A stretch of 64,000 bases of DNA. Source: Pavona decussata. Taxonomy: Eukaryota. Numbering within the stretch: position 1 is the first letter of the stretch; each line of letters starts with the position of its first letter. The notes below the pieces were generated by a model. That model ran no database searches and was not told the origin of the DNA. It saw only the letters and a program-made list of their open reading frames with translations. Below, one piece after another: positions 28,168 through 63,556 of the stretch. Location of the stretch: positions 868,001-932,000 of the forward strand of contig CDRNST010000071.1 in the NCBI GenBank assembly GCA_977016875.1. The letters run 5' to 3'. The position numbers and the translations under genes are program-made.

Positions 28168-31100
28168 CTATATAGACACAGGTGGACTTTGAGTTGCGGC
28201 AGGTTTCTTTGGAGGCTTGTACACAAAAAACGCTGGTTGGTTATAAACCCGAGTACTTTGATGTTCCGCCTCCACCCCATGCTCCTGCGGTTGACCCTCT
28301 TCGTTTTTACCGGGTTTGAATGAGCCCGTGTATCGATGGTTCCAGCGGTAAAGTATAAACACGGAAATCAGAACTACTATCATAGCTGCAAGCACTATCA
28401 GTATGATGACCCAGGCCGACACGCCCTTTGGCCTTGGGGTGGGGAGGTCCTGCTGCATTTCAGGAGGCTGGGTCTTAAATTTCGGCAGATTCCTTTTCGG
28501 AGTTGTGAGTGTAGAAGAAGGTGCGGTGCTTCTTGTTGTACCTTCAAAAAAAGCAGACCAAAAACAATGCAATTGAATACATGGATACTTGTTAAAAAGC
28601 GCTTTAAAGTCCAACTAGGGGGCGAAGGGTTAAGAGATCAGACCTCAACGCCGAGAACTCAGTCCTATAACGAACAGCGGTGTTCTTCAATTTCCACATG
28701 GCTAGTAACCAGGCTAAATAATAAATAGTGTAACGTGGTATAGGAGCCATTGGAAATTGCTCGACGTTTCAATGATATGATGATTTAACCAAGACTTGAA
28801 GATGTGTTCTGTGCTTTAGAGTGAGATGTTTAGGGCTCGAAGAGCTTATGACCAGGACGGTAAATTTCCCAAATCTCTATTCAGGTTTTACATCCATGAA
28901 TTTGGCAGAATATATGATGGTTTCNNNNNNNNNNNNNNNNNNNNNNNNNNNNNNNNNNNNNNNNNNNNNNNNNNNNNNNNNNNNNNNNNNNNNNNNNNNN
29001 NNNNNNNNNNNNNNNNNNNNNNNNNNNNNNNNNNNNNNNNNNNNNNNNNNNNNNNNNNNNNNNNNNNNNNNNNNNNNNNNNNNNNNNNNNNNNNNNNNNN
29101 NNNNTCAGATCGATTGATTGATCGATCGATTGAACGAACTAACNNNNNNNNNNNNNNNNNNNNNNNNNNNNNNNNNNNNNNNNNNNNNNNNNNNNNNNNN
29201 NNNNNNNNNNNNNNNNNNNNNNNNNNNNNNNNNNNNNNNNNNNNNNNNNNNNNNNNNNNNNNNNNNNNNNNNNNNNNNNNNNNNNNNNNNNNNNNNNNNN
29301 NNNNNNNNNNNNNNNNNNNNNNNNNNNNNNNNNNNNNNNNNNNNNNNNNNNNNNNNNNNNNNNNNNNNNNNNNNNNNNNNNNNNNNNNNNNNNNNNNNNN
29401 NNNNNNNNNNNNNNNNNNNNNNNNNNNNNNNNNNNNNNNNNNNNNNNNNNNNNNNNNNNNNNNNNNNNNNNNNNNNNNNNNNNNNNNNNNNNNNNNNNNN
29501 NNNNNNNNNNNNNNNNNNNNNNNNNNNNNNNNAGTTTTAAAGACCACAAGTAATCTTGTTATCTATCTTATATATCACCTTCAGTAGGTATTGATGATGG
29601 CTTACAGCTGTCTGAATCGTCTTCACTAGGGGGGCAGTCAGACGTAGACCCTTCCGCCGCTTTGCACTGGCTCTCAAAAGTGGACAACGACCAATTACTG
29701 GGCCAGGCACGCTTAACTCGATCAGTATCTGTTATCGAGAATCCTTTATATCTTAACAATGCATTATCAAGCACGTTGAACTCTTCAAAGTGAAACTGTT
29801 TCAAAAAACCTTTAAACGACACTGATTTGACCTTTGCAGGGAGAAGTACCTCAGGGGGGGCACCGCCGTAGTAAATCACGTTTGACTGGTTGTTGAGATT
29901 GAGTCTATAAAACTTCCCACTGGTATTTCCGGTGGCCTTTCCAGTATTCCCCCTGTCGAGGATGACCGTTAATCGCGTTCTCTTGCGGCGGATCTCCACA
30001 TAATGCCAGCAGCTATCAGATAGAGCATTCTTTCCAGTTTCCAAGACAACAGGGACTGCAGTTTGAATAGAATAGGACACGTCGAAATTGGTCAAATTCT
30101 TGTATAAATTGCTTGTAATGGCCCTGGGTTTGATGTTTCAAAGAGCGGTTAACGCTAAGCTTAGATTAAACAACGATTAAGTTAAAGTCACCTAGCGAGG
30201 TAAGGTAAATCATTATCGGGAGCAGGAATGGCGCAGTGGTGAGAGCACTCGCCTACCACCAATGTGGCCCGGGTTCAATTCCCGGGCTCGGCCTCACATG
30301 TGGGTTGAGCTTATTGTTGGTTCTCATCCTTGCTCCTAAGAGGTTTTTCTCCGGGTACTCCGGTTTTCCCCTCTCCTCAAAAACCAACATTTCCAAATTC
30401 CAAAGTCGTACTGGAGAGTGTCACTCCCCAGTTAGTGCTCTGCGCTGAATACATTGACACTTATTAAATAAATAAAGTTATTTTATTTTAACCTCAGGTT
30501 AAATCTGAAAGTCAGTGAAGAATTCTCGAAGGCTCGACCTGATTAAAAAGTAAAAGTGAGAAAGGCCAGGTGGAAAATCTGGAAACTGAGATGACATCTG
30601 CTAATCAAAACCATCTGCCATAGTACCGTCTCCATCCTGTGGTCATATATGGCTTACAATCTATTAAAAACTCTTCAGGCACAATTTAATAGTCGAATGG
30701 CATAGCCTTTTAATTTCATTTTATTTCATTGTAGTTGTAAGTTGTCTCTCTGGGAAGATCCGTGCAACATAGAGAGGAGTAAAAACGCTGAATCTGCACA
30801 TTGCACGGAAATCAAATTAAATTGGAAAACTGTTTGAAGAGAAAAGAAACAATTCCTTTCAAACCATGACATTTGATCTTAGGTGATCATTTCCTTTATT
30901 CTGTAGTAATATATCAAACACGAGGAGGGATGTGTCCCCCGATTTCCAAACACCTAGAAGTAGGTTGGAAAAACGAGGCGCAGCCGAGATTTTTTTTTTA
31001 CCAACTTCGAGGTGTTTGGAAATAGAAGGAAACCCTCTTTTGAGTGTTTGATATAGCTTCTCAAACTATTGATAATTCTTGGAGAAATTCGAAGCGAAAG

Positions 31101-62800: not shown

Positions 62801-63556
62801 GGGAATGTCTTCACGCAGCTGTTGCTTACAAGACGGTCATTGATTGATTTCATTTGTTCAAATAACATCCTGTTTGTTCGAAAAAAATGGTATTAAACTC
62901 GACAAAAATCGACAAATTCATTTACACGCAGGTGCGCATGCAACAAAACTCAACCCCAAAATCAAAACTTGCAAGAAAGAAAAGCGGCAATTCGCAATAC
63001 AAAAGATTACTTTAACAATCAGCGCGCACAACTCTTACCTGTTGAGATTAAAATTCTCATAGCGTATAGCCGGTAAAGACAGGTCATTGTATTTTGTGTA
63101 CCAAGGAATACCGCCAACGAGTAAATCACTTGTGCCTCCAAACACGTATCTCCCATCTCCTGTGTAGTAGGTGCTGTTACTAAACTTGTCGTCCACGGTC
63201 ACCTTTGTTACGCTATAATTTCTTTGGACAGTTACTTTGTGCCACTTTCCGTCGGCGAGTTTATGACCAACAAGAAGACTTTGCGTTTCTTCGCAGTTTC
63301 CCATTTTCAGTCGCAGTCTGAGTCTTCCGTCCAACAGGGACAGAGAAATGAACTGACACTGTCCTTTGTCGTCCTCGTAAACCAGGAATCCGTTCTTGCT
63401 GTACGTCCTGAAGTGAAACTTCAATGAACCGTTTGTTTTCGCGTTCCATCCCTTAAAAACAGCGAAGGCTGTTGGGTCTTTTGAGAAACGAAGACCCGTG
63501 CCTGCTAAGGATCCGGCTATGAAACTGAGTTGAAAGAAGACCGCAATAGCAAGCAT
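56239..63556 (-). CDS. Neurexin-like gene E: signal peptide-LamG-EGF-LamG-Cys loop-stalk-TM-4.1m motif, ~564 aa
   Basis: Exons 63556-63039, 61842-61625, 58323-58105, 57443-57009 and 56543-56239 in frame (1695 nt). Motifs FHFRTYSKNGFLVYEDD, LADGKWHKV, FQGCI, CMNGGVC...CDCKGTGYEGTNC, FGLRTDAPNG and YDRQWHWV; TM followed by YRWNSRYSGSFK. Confidence 0.9.
57901..57948. repeat. (GAGT)n-like microsatellite
   Basis: Direct reading. Confidence 0.85.
58671..59395. mobile_element. Palindromic MITE interrupted by a LINE fragment; ~80-bp-arm hairpin centred at 59253
   Basis: Arms tttttatactag..gacgcatta.ccgtctggacgaac / gttcgtccagacggataatgcgtcttgtagtataaaaa; central hairpin 59173-59331. Confidence 0.75.
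58735..59170 (-). mobile_element. CR1/L2-type LINE 3' fragment with (CATA)n tail
   Basis: LDWERLSLRR...MMYKTINDLSPEYLQSLF...YLKRSFSYSGAMLWNNL; an inverted copy lies at 59463-59831. Confidence 0.8.

Follow-up and report, generated by a model that had tools for sequence, protein, structure and literature searches.

Positions 28168-63556 of a 64,000-nucleotide stretch of Pavona decussata DNA (the window) are likely to hold five short neurexin genes of a cnidarian-specific kind, each transcribed on its own and arranged head to tail in a conserved array. All five, ordered E, D, C, B, A, lie on the minus strand within 35 kb. The outer genes, E and A, encode proteins with two LNS domains, a transmembrane (TM) segment and a neurexin-like juxtamembrane motif, and the inner genes, D, C and B, encode single-LNS proteins, some or all of which may be lipid-anchored. 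This reading draws on the domain content, the splice structure of A, the expression of A and of D orthologues, the kinship of the first LNS domains with LNS1 of alpha-neurexins, and the conservation of the array.

Layout of the array and gene models

Searches were run exon by exon, and the frames and lengths of the models were computed arithmetically. RNA contigs were aligned to 29533-35500 (gene A); the models of E, D, C and B are based on splice sites. In each of the genes, exon 1 codes for a signal peptide followed by a Laminin-G (LNS) domain (Pfam Laminin_G_2, E-values 6e-20 in E, 3e-12 in D, 4e-13 in C, 5e-11 in B and 3e-10 in A) and is followed by a consensus GT donor, the intron lying in phase 2. 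Exon 2 opens in all five with one base and [RVGSx]F[QED]GC, followed by an EGF-like six-Cys unit. Pfam EGF scored above the cut-off in E (27.8 bits) and B (28.3 bits), at the cut-off in A (21.5) and below threshold in C (17.9), and gave no match in D, where the unit is recognized by its six-Cys pattern only. The first LamG domains of the paralogues share only 28–31% identity with that of gene E. A second LamG domain, divided between two exons, was found by Pfam in A and E, which also share an acidic Cys-loop, a TM segment, the motif LYRWNxRY[ST]GSFKP (YRWN[HS]RY[TS]GSFKP) and the intron phases 2,1,1,1. An earlier note, written from the letters alone, had described five head-to-tail minus-strand genes, each with a signal peptide and LamG on a first exon ending in phase 2, strongly diverged LamG domains, and outer genes extended by a second LamG, an acidic Cys-loop, a TM segment and YRWNxRY[TS]GSFK, all of which was borne out. 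Its exon 2, starting xF[QED]GC and continuing into an EGF, was recovered in all five genes as regards the start, whereas the EGF was recovered by Pfam in E and B, marginally in A, and not in C or D.

Gene E (56242..63556, stop 56239-56241, about 564 aa) is of the TM type and was modelled from Pfam matches and splice sites. Its exon 1 (63556-63039) carries the signal peptide and LNS-a, exon 2 (61842-61625) FQGC and the EGF, exons 3 and 4 (58323-58105 and 57443-57009) LNS-b and then SGSG and the acidic Cys-loop, and exon 5 (56543-56242) an S/T stalk, the TM segment, LYRWNSRYSGSFKP and the end ..HEEKA. The Ser-Gly repeats followed by the acidic Cys-loop, SGSG-C-DPMEDDEDAS-C (57034..57093), form a candidate heparan-sulfate region. 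Orthologues of E exon 1 were found on many coral contigs at 64–95% identity, with a dN/dS of 0.20; the tail is kept in L018 and L019, and the juxtamembrane motif is invariant among E orthologues, which in two other corals end in ..HDEKV and ..HEDKV.

Gene A (28171..34118, stop 28168-28170, about 624 aa), also of the TM type, was modelled from RNA contigs and Pfam matches. It comprises exon 1 (34118-33556, signal peptide and LNS-a), exon 2 (33014-32779, FEGC and EGF), exons 3 and 4 (31786-31562 and 30055-29579, LNS-b and the acidic Cys-loop), and exon 5 (28541-28171, stalk, TM segment, LYRWNHRYTGSFKP and the end ..PPVSI). The loop, C-PPSEDDSDS-C at about 29600-29640, is the counterpart of that in E. 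Spliced RNA contigs from three studies (X4 record 17, X9 record 20, X1 records 1 and 5) prove exons 1–4, with joints at 33014/33556, 31786/32779 and 30054-5/31562, all GT..AG; they extend to 34291, upstream of the ATG. Intron 4 (28542..29578) contains both assembly gaps, N runs at 28925-29104 and 29144-29532 with a 39-nt piece between them. X1 record 1 passes from exon 3 into exon 4; its match to the genome ends 45 nt above the gap, at 29579/29577, and it continues for another 1306 nt. The exon 4/5 junction, which crosses the gaps, is predicted from a donor GT at 29578-29577 and an acceptor AG at 28543-28542; these give an in-frame join (G|GT = Gly), and the corresponding junction of gene E has the same phase. 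A small additional exon of A may be concealed in the gap; the splice-site model of E has no exon at the matching place.

Inner genes and their C-terminal ends

Of the LNS(A)-EGF-LNS(B) cassette found in the outer genes, D, C and B have the LNS(A)-EGF part; LNS-b is missing from them, as are the Cys-loop, TM helix and cytoplasmic tail. Gene D (50768..52376, stop 50765-50767, about 379 aa) has two exons, the first (52376-51835) with the signal peptide and LNS-a, the second (51362-50768) with FQGC, a degenerate six-Cys EGF, a Ser/Thr-rich stalk, ..AMAKKSSGA and a 20-residue hydrophobic C-end. Gene B (39688..42763, stop 39685-39687, about 374 aa) comprises exon 1 (42763-42150, signal peptide and LNS-a), exon 2 (40987-40761, WFQGC and EGF) and a putative exon 3 (39968-39688) with an Asn-rich stalk, ..SPVPSPG, WCL.. 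and an 18-residue hydrophobic C-end. In gene C (43207..48683), exon 1 (48683-48133, signal peptide and LNS-a) and exon 2 (43927-43704, FDGC and EGF) are followed by a candidate tail exon (43292-43207) with a weak acceptor, encoding G-SS and a hydrophobic segment.

Orthologues of D were found intact in several assemblies at 48–86% identity, and as complete open reading frames on 1.4–2.1 kb transcript contigs in many runs. Two of these, P0198 (365 aa) and P0204 (385 aa), agree with D in architecture and tail, and P0204 belongs to a 13-member cluster with further transcript-length forms of 378–418 aa. The D tail is kept in five genomic copies from four assemblies (L018 with two copies, L019, L022 and L024). 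An orthologue of B was found in one other assembly (L019/L021), with 42% identity in exon 1 and 57% in exon 2, and has a downstream open reading frame ending in ..MEWCL and a hydrophobic end. Orthologues of C exon 1 share 56–75% identity, and exon 2 is 72% identical in L019; these are exon-level genomic open reading frames only, full-length transcript-derived C orthologues not having been found. Comparison of the window with L019 by blastn and tblastx gave no convincing conserved C tail exon, the candidate hydrophobic open reading frame in L019 having a poor acceptor.

The hydrophobic C-ends of the inner genes span about 12–20 residues. Small residues followed by a hydrophobic extreme C-end, the GPI-type pattern, were recognized by eye in D, B and their orthologues; the spacer is short in D, where the run begins only 3 residues past the small residues, and absent in the C candidate. 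On this pattern we infer that D, B and perhaps C end in a GPI-attachment signal. GPI-like tails had been claimed for all three inner genes: a hydrophobic tail is reasonably supported for D, through transcript orthologues and genomic copies, and for B, whose tail is conserved in kind, whereas that of C is a candidate for which no conservation was found, and the GPI anchor itself is a prediction from the hydrophobic segments.

It is possible, if rather doubtful, that the family is right and the inner proteins are not GPI-anchored, being either secreted LNS1-EGF proteins or type I proteins with a short C-terminal helix and almost no cytoplasmic tail. The 3-residue distance in D and the 13 residues beyond the hydrophobic run in Nematostella P0190 speak for such a reading. 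So does gene C, which may be secreted: its frame stops 3 codons past the EGF if the donor of exon 2 is unused, and its tail exon combines a weak acceptor with the lack of a conserved counterpart. That donor is, however, a consensus GTAAGA in the same phase as in B, A and E; orthologues of D and B keep a hydrophobic extreme C-end after Ser, Gly, Ala or Asn in every species seen; and the spacer is variable in length, with a 6-residue insertion in L022, which fits a cleaved signal better than a helix.

The resemblance of the inner units to truncated forms of A or E could also suggest decaying partial duplicates of a TM-type gene that have lost their 3' halves and are unexpressed or non-functional, and the degenerate EGF of D and a dN/dS of 0.63 for D exon 1 against a close relative (a value from small counts, compatible with relaxed constraint) point the same way. 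We regard decay as very improbable: in this genome the reading frames are open and the splice sites and signal peptides undamaged, orthologues of D and C are intact in several assemblies and one of B was found in another, D orthologues are expressed as complete mRNAs, and the tail motif ..AMAKK.. with its hydrophobic end is conserved.

Relationship to neurexins

Comparisons of the LNS domains support a neurexin-type identity of the five genes, as opposed to generic LamG proteins. The best PDB match of E exon 1 was neurexin-1-alpha, and the top matches in a library of 1.84 billion proteins were named alpha-neurexins, aligned at the N-terminal LNS1; short library matches at 33–41% identity included N-terminal fragments of vertebrate neurexins 2 and 3. 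A profile built from the five LNS-a domains scored 84–111 bits on LNS1 of four alpha-neurexins and at most 50 bits on the remaining LG domains of neurexins, Caspr and laminin. In a careful maximum-likelihood tree with Caspr and laminin alpha as outgroups, the five LNS-a domains and Nematostella XP_001631934 ('neurexin-3', 304 aa) formed one clade (99/91), sister to LNS1 of bilaterian alpha-neurexins (97/84), with Caspr L1-4 and laminin LG1-5 outside. The grouping supports the neurexin assignment of the earlier note, which had proposed an LNS-domain phylogeny as a check. For the LNS-b domains of A and E, the closest matches were second LNS domains in further short neurexins of cnidarians, followed by neurexin LNS2.

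The stalk and tail add to this picture. The acidic Cys-loop and adjoining Ser-Gly of A, E and the E orthologues follow the same pattern as alpha-neurexin stalks, and acidic Cys-loops together with the spacing LY-x4-R-x2-G-S-aromatic-basic are common to the alpha-neurexins P0035, P0051, P0234, P0041 and P0045; the juxtamembrane spacing of A and E is identical to that of P0035, P0051 and P0234. The predicted 4.1-type motif beside the TM segment, recognized beforehand, is found in A and E with alpha-neurexin spacing. Pfam Syndecan gave weak, sub-threshold matches. The Cys-loop stalk also resembles the heparan-sulfate-modified Drosophila Dnrx peptide quoted in Zhang 2018, and the stalk region is heparan-sulfate-modified in mouse Nrx1 and Drosophila Dnrx (PMC6173057). 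The neurexin/Caspr PDZ-type end (EYYV, EWYV, EWFI) is absent from A, which ends in ..PPVSI, and from E, which ends in ..HEEKA or, in the two other corals, ..[DE]KV; the conserved end may still be a PDZ ligand of another type.

LamG domains are widespread and fast-diverging, those of the array share only 30–41% identity with neurexin LNS1, and the LNS-b scores are ambiguous (59 and 51 bits for neurexin LNS2 vs 57 and 52.5 for Caspr L1), so that LamG-EGF adhesion genes derived from Caspr, laminin or agrin might have converged on neurexin features. Such convergence is highly unlikely in view of the 97/84 clade that excludes the Caspr and laminin domains, the two-fold gap in profile score, the independent neurexin-specific stalk (acidic Cys-loop and Ser-Gly) with the same juxtamembrane spacing, and the neurexin-like names that NCBI gives to relatives in Nematostella, Rhopilema and Stylophora.

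Grouping with alpha-neurexin LNS1, the Cys-loop and the juxtamembrane spacing place the five genes among the cnidarian short neurexins, and they therefore belong to a known kind, the delta- and epsilon-Nrxns of Guzman et al. (Nat Commun 2024; PMC11294457), probably to the class that these authors call 'delta'. The part of that paper considered here describes short Nrxns that are found only in cnidarians, encoded by separate genes and expanded in copy number, in keeping with the short sea-anemone neurexins mentioned in the earlier note; the delta-Nrxns of Nematostella are neuronal, and their knock-down led to less peristalsis. The five coral genes are likewise short, cnidarian-restricted and each a gene of its own, and the 304-aa Nematostella 'neurexin-3' nests among them. 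Nematostella short Nrxns have clear PDZ ends, one being noted for an 'incomplete C-terminus' (PMC11294457), whereas A and E are without a classic PDZ end. The same part of the paper makes no mention of a genomic array, a GPI-type or single-LNS subclass, an LNS1 affinity, an acidic Cys-loop or a 4.1-type motif. Single-LNS inner members with a hydrophobic C-end appear to be new.

With bilaterian alpha-neurexins, A and E share an LNS1-like LNS-a, an LNS2-like LNS-b, a Cys-loop beside Ser-Gly, a single TM segment and LY[KR]xxxRxxG[ST][YF][KR]. They differ in having one cassette instead of three and in missing the EYYV/EWYV end, and the other three coral genes differ further in missing everything from LNS-b to the tail. 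Alpha-neurexins have six LNS domains (four or five in cnidarians) and three EGF units, and the coral genes have one or two LNS domains each. Vertebrate beta- and gamma-neurexins are also short forms alongside long ones, arising from internal promoters of the alpha gene with LNS6 or no LNS (PMC11294457); unlike them, the coral short forms are independent genes with an LNS1-type domain. Caspr/Neurexin IV (CNTNAP) resembles A and E in its LamG-EGF modules, single TM segment and juxtamembrane R-x-K-G-S/E-Y. It differs in its N-terminal discoidin domain and four LamG domains (references P0088 and P0089), in falling into other clades and in its tail spacing; Pfam found no F5/8 type C (discoidin) domain in any exon of the five genes.

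Proposed roles of the encoded proteins

The module common to all five proteins would be a signal peptide with an LNS of alpha-neurexin LNS1 type, followed after the phase-2 intron by its last beta-strand (FxGC) and the EGF-like unit. E and A appear to keep the first LNS1-EGF-LNS2 cassette of alpha-neurexin, set directly on a neurexin stalk and tail: an acidic Cys-loop by Ser-Gly as a candidate heparan-sulfate site, then one predicted TM helix and a cytoplasmic LY[RK]xxxRxxGS[FY][KR] at neurexin spacing. They would thus be type I adhesion receptors, probably proteoglycans, whose LNS domains would bind putative partners and whose tail may provide a link to the cortical cytoskeleton by way of a FERM/4.1-type protein. 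D, B and perhaps C would present LNS1-EGF on a Ser/Thr/Asn-rich stalk with a short hydrophobic end after small residues. As GPI forms they would expose a binding module of this kind on the outer leaflet with no cytoplasmic link, and might be ligands or co-receptors for the partners of the TM forms, or compete for them.

Ephrin-A (GPI-anchored) and ephrin-B (TM) present one binding module in two ways, by a lipid anchor in the former and by a TM segment with a signalling tail in the latter. The likeness is an analogy of working and not of kinship, the fold being unrelated and the coral anchor a prediction. We tentatively put forward, with somewhat less than even confidence, an ancient coral 'neurexin locus' in which two heparan-sulfate-bearing TM short neurexins flank lipid-anchored single-LNS1 neurexins as a new anchorage class. 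If so, one LNS1-type module would have signalling and non-signalling presentations encoded side by side and perhaps co-regulated, with the conserved gene order as a handle on co-regulation. If GPI anchoring does not hold, what is left is a tandem family of known kind with good annotation.

Neurexins are central synaptic organisers. The cnidarian short neurexins were linked to neuronal function only in 2024. Our reading would imply that they derive from the LNS1-EGF(-LNS2) end of the ancestral protein and that the proteoglycan stalk and 4.1-type tail motif date back to the cnidarian-bilaterian ancestor. A conserved subclass without a cytoplasmic part would raise questions of cis/trans competition, decoys and ligands at early synapses or epithelia, and the five paralogues offer a set for binding screens against neuroligin, dystroglycan, alpha2delta and Ig-type partners in corals and Nematostella.

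Gene boundaries, conservation and age of the array

The units had been described as separate genes and not exons of one, and this is supported: each has its own signal peptide and stop, the A contigs hold A exons only, and complete D-orthologue transcripts exist. Alpha-neurexins have repeated LNS-EGF-LNS cassettes, and the five units lie head to tail on a single strand within 35 kb. Nevertheless, the chance that they are wrongly cut exons of one multi-LNS gene (an alpha-neurexin or large LamG protein) is negligible, given that each starts with Met and a signal peptide and ends in a stop, that the TM-and-tail exon of E sits upstream of D, C and B, that all five first LNS domains are LNS1-type and not a 1–6 series, that the A contigs begin in their own 5' UTR with no joint to B, and that D-orthologue mRNAs start and stop inside one unit.

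The array recurs, complete or partial, in three further coral assemblies: as E, D, C, B, A in L019/L021, as E, D, D', C in L018 and as D, C in L024. Around the locus of the 304-aa Nematostella relative, a stretch of 10 kb to each side showed no neighbouring LamG. Since the paralogues are only 28–31% identical, the same order recurs in distant corals, and a Nematostella gene is nested in the clade, the array is old and not a recent local expansion; the earlier suggestion of a locally expanded repertoire, with hypothetical roles in wiring, allorecognition or symbiont contact, is not supported in that sense. The conserved E-D-C-B-A array appears to be new, its layout being without description in the literature searched.

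LNS1-type matches in this genome are limited to the array and one gene on another contig (C87:193792-200500), a second short neurexin and the orthologue of Desmophyllum KAJ7365339. Like A and E, it encodes a signal peptide, LNS-EGF-LNS, acidic Cys-loops, a TM segment and a juxtamembrane ..NGSYKG. Unlike them, it consists of two exons and is uninterrupted before FxGC, its long stalk bears two Cys-loops, it has the PDZ-type end ..VTEV, and it lies outside the array; its orthologue branches outside the five-gene clade.

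Five short neurexin-like genes in a tandem array

In the 602-Mb coral genome that carries the window (contig C71, 868001–932000), five units lie on the minus strand at 28168–63556, in the order E-D-C-B-A along transcription. Each of the five starts with a methionine, a hydrophobic signal-like segment and a Laminin-G/LNS domain, here called LNS-a (Pfam Laminin_G_2 E-values of 6e-20 to 3e-10 across the five first exons), and exon 1 ends in every gene at a consensus GT donor in phase 2. Exon 2 of all five opens with one base followed by [x]F[QED]GC, which is the last LNS strand, and then by a six-Cys EGF-like unit. 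The Pfam EGF model scored above cut-off in E and B, at cut-off in A and below threshold in C; it was not detected in D, where the six-Cys pattern alone remains. The Pfam matches, the splice sites and the phase-2 ends of exon 1 bear out the five tandem genes with Laminin-G and FxGC/EGF exons described in the earlier note. All searches were made per exon, no spliced protein being used as a query, and the predicted product lengths were derived by frame arithmetic only (E, 564 aa; D, 379 aa; C, 287 aa with a candidate tail; B, 374 aa; A, 624 aa).

Relationship to neurexins

When exon 1 of E was searched, the best solved-structure match was neurexin-1-alpha, and the best non-coral matches in a library of 1.84 billion proteins were six-LNS proteins of 1400–1650 aa; those looked up were named neurexins (Ptychodera, Schistocerca, Pollicipes, Magallana and a penguin fragment). 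The exon aligned with the N-terminal LNS1 in most of these six-LNS matches, and its short matches, at 33–41% identity, included N-terminal pieces of neurexins from pig, dog and fish. A profile built from the five LNS-a domains scored 84–111 bits on the LNS1 of four alpha-neurexins and at most 50 bits on other neurexin LNS domains, Caspr LamG domains (references recognised by Pfam) and laminin LG domains. An IQ-TREE phylogeny of 64 domains, with neurexin LNS1-6, Caspr L1-4 and laminin LG1-5 as the comparison set, placed the five LNS-a, two D orthologues and a 304-aa Nematostella 'neurexin-3' in one clade (UFBoot 99 / SH-aLRT 91). This clade was sister to bilaterian LNS1 together with a Lingula short form (97/84) and separate from neurexin LNS2-6, Caspr L1-4 and laminin LG1-5, in agreement with the neurexin identity proposed previously. 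The second LNS domain (LNS-b), which only A and E possess, matched best, per exon, the second LNS of other cnidarian short neurexins, followed about equally by neurexin LNS2 and Caspr L1.

Outer genes E and A

In E and A, the second LNS is divided between two exons and is followed by a Ser/Gly-flanked acidic Cys-loop, a Ser/Thr-rich stalk, a 23-residue transmembrane (TM) segment and the motif LYRWN[SH]RY[ST]GSFKP. The intron phases (2,1,1,1) are identical in the two genes, and the introns are all GT..AG. The alpha-neurexins retrieved for comparison likewise have acidic Cys-loops beside Ser-Gly and a tail of the form LY[KR][YF]R[NS]R[NSD]EG[ST]Y[KR], in which LY, R, G, S, the aromatic and the basic residue occupy the same positions as in A and E; the Cys-loop by Ser-Gly and this equal motif spacing agree with a neurexin-type stalk and tail. 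In Nrx1, the heparan-sulfate serine lies directly before the Cys-loop. Mouse Nrx1 and Drosophila Dnrx were reported to carry heparan sulfate on the stalk that links the last LNS to the TM segment, the Nrx1 site being the Ser of the peptide LVASAE and the Dnrx test peptide having an acidic Cys-loop between repeats at Ser-Gly positions (Zhang et al. 2018, PMC6173057). Gene A ends in ..PPVSI and gene E in ..HEEKA, kept as ..H[DE][DE]KV in two other corals, and the classic neurexin PDZ end is absent from both.

Transcripts of gene A and the assembly gaps

Two N runs (28925–29104 and 29144–29532), separated by a 39-nt piece, lie between exon 4 and the TM exon of A, and RNA contigs were aligned to 29533–35500, i.e. 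above these gaps. Contigs from three studies (X4 record 17, X9 record 20, and X1 records 1 and 5) gave the joints 34164/34291..33556 to 33014..32779 to 31786..31562 to 30055..29743/29577, and the skipped parts are flanked by GT..AG on the minus strand. By these spliced contigs, exons 1–4 of A are proven and the gene is expressed. The contigs start upstream of the ATG of A, and no exon of gene B was found in them.

X1 record 1 departs from the genome at 29579/29577 and continues with 1306 nt that do not match 29533–29576, so that a donor must lie 45 nt above the gap. For intron 4, the sequence offers a GT at 29578–29577 and an AG acceptor at 28543–28542, and the two 'extra' matched bases of this record are explained by exon 5 beginning with GT. 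The predicted exon 4/5 junction is in frame (G followed by GT, giving Gly), with the phase found in E, whose corresponding intron is 465 nt long and free of gaps. From the donor and acceptor sites, the in-frame junction and the phase shared with E, both gaps therefore sit in intron 4 of A, where they may possibly hide a small additional exon.

Over two segments of intron 3 of A (30130–30527 and 30926–31323), contig depth summed to between thousands and 100,000 in each of the four runs. Loose ends and short internal joints are numerous there, and the segments resemble transcribed repeats of high copy number, e.g. SINEs or another kind of transposable element. One contig from a metatranscriptome (X11 record 7) is ~91% identical and unspliced over 29547–30307 (exon 4 of A and into both flanking introns); it probably derives from genomic DNA or pre-mRNA of a related coral present in the sample.

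Hydrophobic ends of the inner genes

Exon 2 of D runs from a Ser/Thr-rich stalk through ..AMAKKSSGA into 20 mostly hydrophobic residues and a stop. Its transcript-derived orthologues P0198 (365 aa) and P0204 (385 aa), each a complete ORF from a short contig, match D in plan and kind of C-end, and the P0204 cluster has 13 members, further transcript-length forms of 378–418 aa included. The same plan and hydrophobic end recur in five genomic copies from four other assemblies, one of them having 6 residues inserted after the small residues and before the hydrophobic run. Exon 2 of B closes with a phase-1 GTAAAC donor, and the putative tail exon would start at 39968, behind the one fitting acceptor that has a pyrimidine tract; it would encode an Asn-rich stalk, ..SPVPSPG-WCL.. 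and 15 more hydrophobic residues before a stop. A comparably placed ORF downstream of B exon 2 in a distant coral ends in ..SME-WCL.. and a hydrophobic end. Judged by sequence, we treat the C-ends of D and B as conserved and GPI-signal-like.

Exon 2 of C has a GTAAGA donor in phase 1; left unspliced, it would reach a stop 3 codons past the EGF. The candidate tail at 43292–43207 has a mediocre acceptor and no spacer, and neither a conserved counterpart in other corals nor a transcript was found for it. The GPI-like tails that the earlier note assigned to all three inner genes are thus retained for D and B as conserved GPI-signal-like ends, and for C as a candidate only.

The Asn-rich run in the stalk of B (39780–39860, minus strand; ..NNHNNKNNDNNNNNNNGND..) is encoded by an AAY-rich simple repeat, and its length is likely polymorphic.

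Conservation and age of the array

The LNS-a domains are 28–31% identical to that of E and are mutual closest relatives within the genome, one gene on contig C87 excepted. Assembly ERZ25071792 (L019/L021) carries E, D, C, B and A in a single orientation, with per-exon identities of 35–72% to the window; ERZ25067546 (L018) has the order E, D, D', C, with an additional D copy, and a third set (L024) has D, C. The 304-aa Nematostella relative nests within the LNS-a clade and has no LamG neighbour within 10 kb. Compared with close relatives, and on small counts, exon 1 gave a dN/dS of 0.20 in E and 0.63 in D, and exon 2 of D gave 0.39. By the divergence of the paralogues, the gene order in other corals, the nesting of the Nematostella relative and dN/dS, the array is old and has been kept, its members evolving at unequal rates; the local expansion proposed earlier is not a recent one.

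At L018:14299–15862, in a related coral, D and D' stand in tandem with nearly identical exon-2 products, a duplication showing that array copy number differs between lineages. A 196-aa open frame with a tandem 'VTVRVTRI' repeat in intron 1 of the C orthologue (L019:13859–14449) was rejected as an exon, being a minisatellite.

Known short neurexins and proposed roles

Short neurexins specific to cnidarians, of a delta and an epsilon type, were described by Guzman et al. 2024 (PMC11294457) as separate and expanded genes; the Nematostella delta-Nrxns are neuronal and required for normal peristalsis, and one Nematostella short neurexin has an 'incomplete C-terminus'. These delta and epsilon genes bear out the earlier note's mention of short neurexins in a sea anemone, and the gene family itself is already known. 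The text examined of that paper makes no mention of a gene array, lipid anchor, LNS1 affinity, Cys-loop or 4.1-type motif, and a full-text literature search returned no other paper on these; as far as searched, neither the conserved array nor the subclass with a single LNS and a hydrophobic end has been described.

A sixth short neurexin, with two exons, lies outside the array on contig C87 of the same genome (G000 C87:193792–200500, plus strand; L003, L025). Its exon 1 encodes signal peptide, LNS and EGF with no intron before FxGC, and an LNS in exon 2 is followed by a long stalk that contains two acidic Cys-loops and by a TM helix, ..NGSYKG and a terminal ..VTEV. This gene is the orthologue of Desmophyllum KAJ7365339 and may be of the epsilon type.

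We propose that E and A would serve at the surface as type I receptors presenting LNS1-EGF-LNS2; they probably carry a glycosaminoglycan chain close to the membrane and would reach the cortical cytoskeleton via the 4.1-type motif, and a further docking site is suggested by the conserved extreme C-end of E. In D and B, and possibly C, a flexible, glycosylated and lipid-anchored stalk would bear LNS1-EGF alone; having no cytoplasmic part, these proteins would act by binding only and may serve as trans ligands, cis co-receptors or competitors for the partners of E and A. Mammalian LNS1 is a variable domain with ligands of its own (IgSF21 and alpha2delta-3), which fits a diversifying recognition module.

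Other features of the window

A third assembly gap (1017–1165, 149 N) lies outside the array. At 8804–12703 on the plus strand, three consecutive long ORFs (289, 660 and 338 aa) occupy a GC-rich island (0.48–0.49 vs 0.35–0.42 around); the 289-aa ORF has a SAP domain and the 660-aa ORF a weak reverse-transcriptase match (RVT_1, E 2e-5), and the island is probably a retroelement insertion. On the minus strand, a 176-aa ORF at 20641–21168 has a match to the acyltransferase family LRAT / H-rev107 (PF04970, E 1.5e-11); it probably belongs, as an exon, to a flanking gene that lies downstream of the array.
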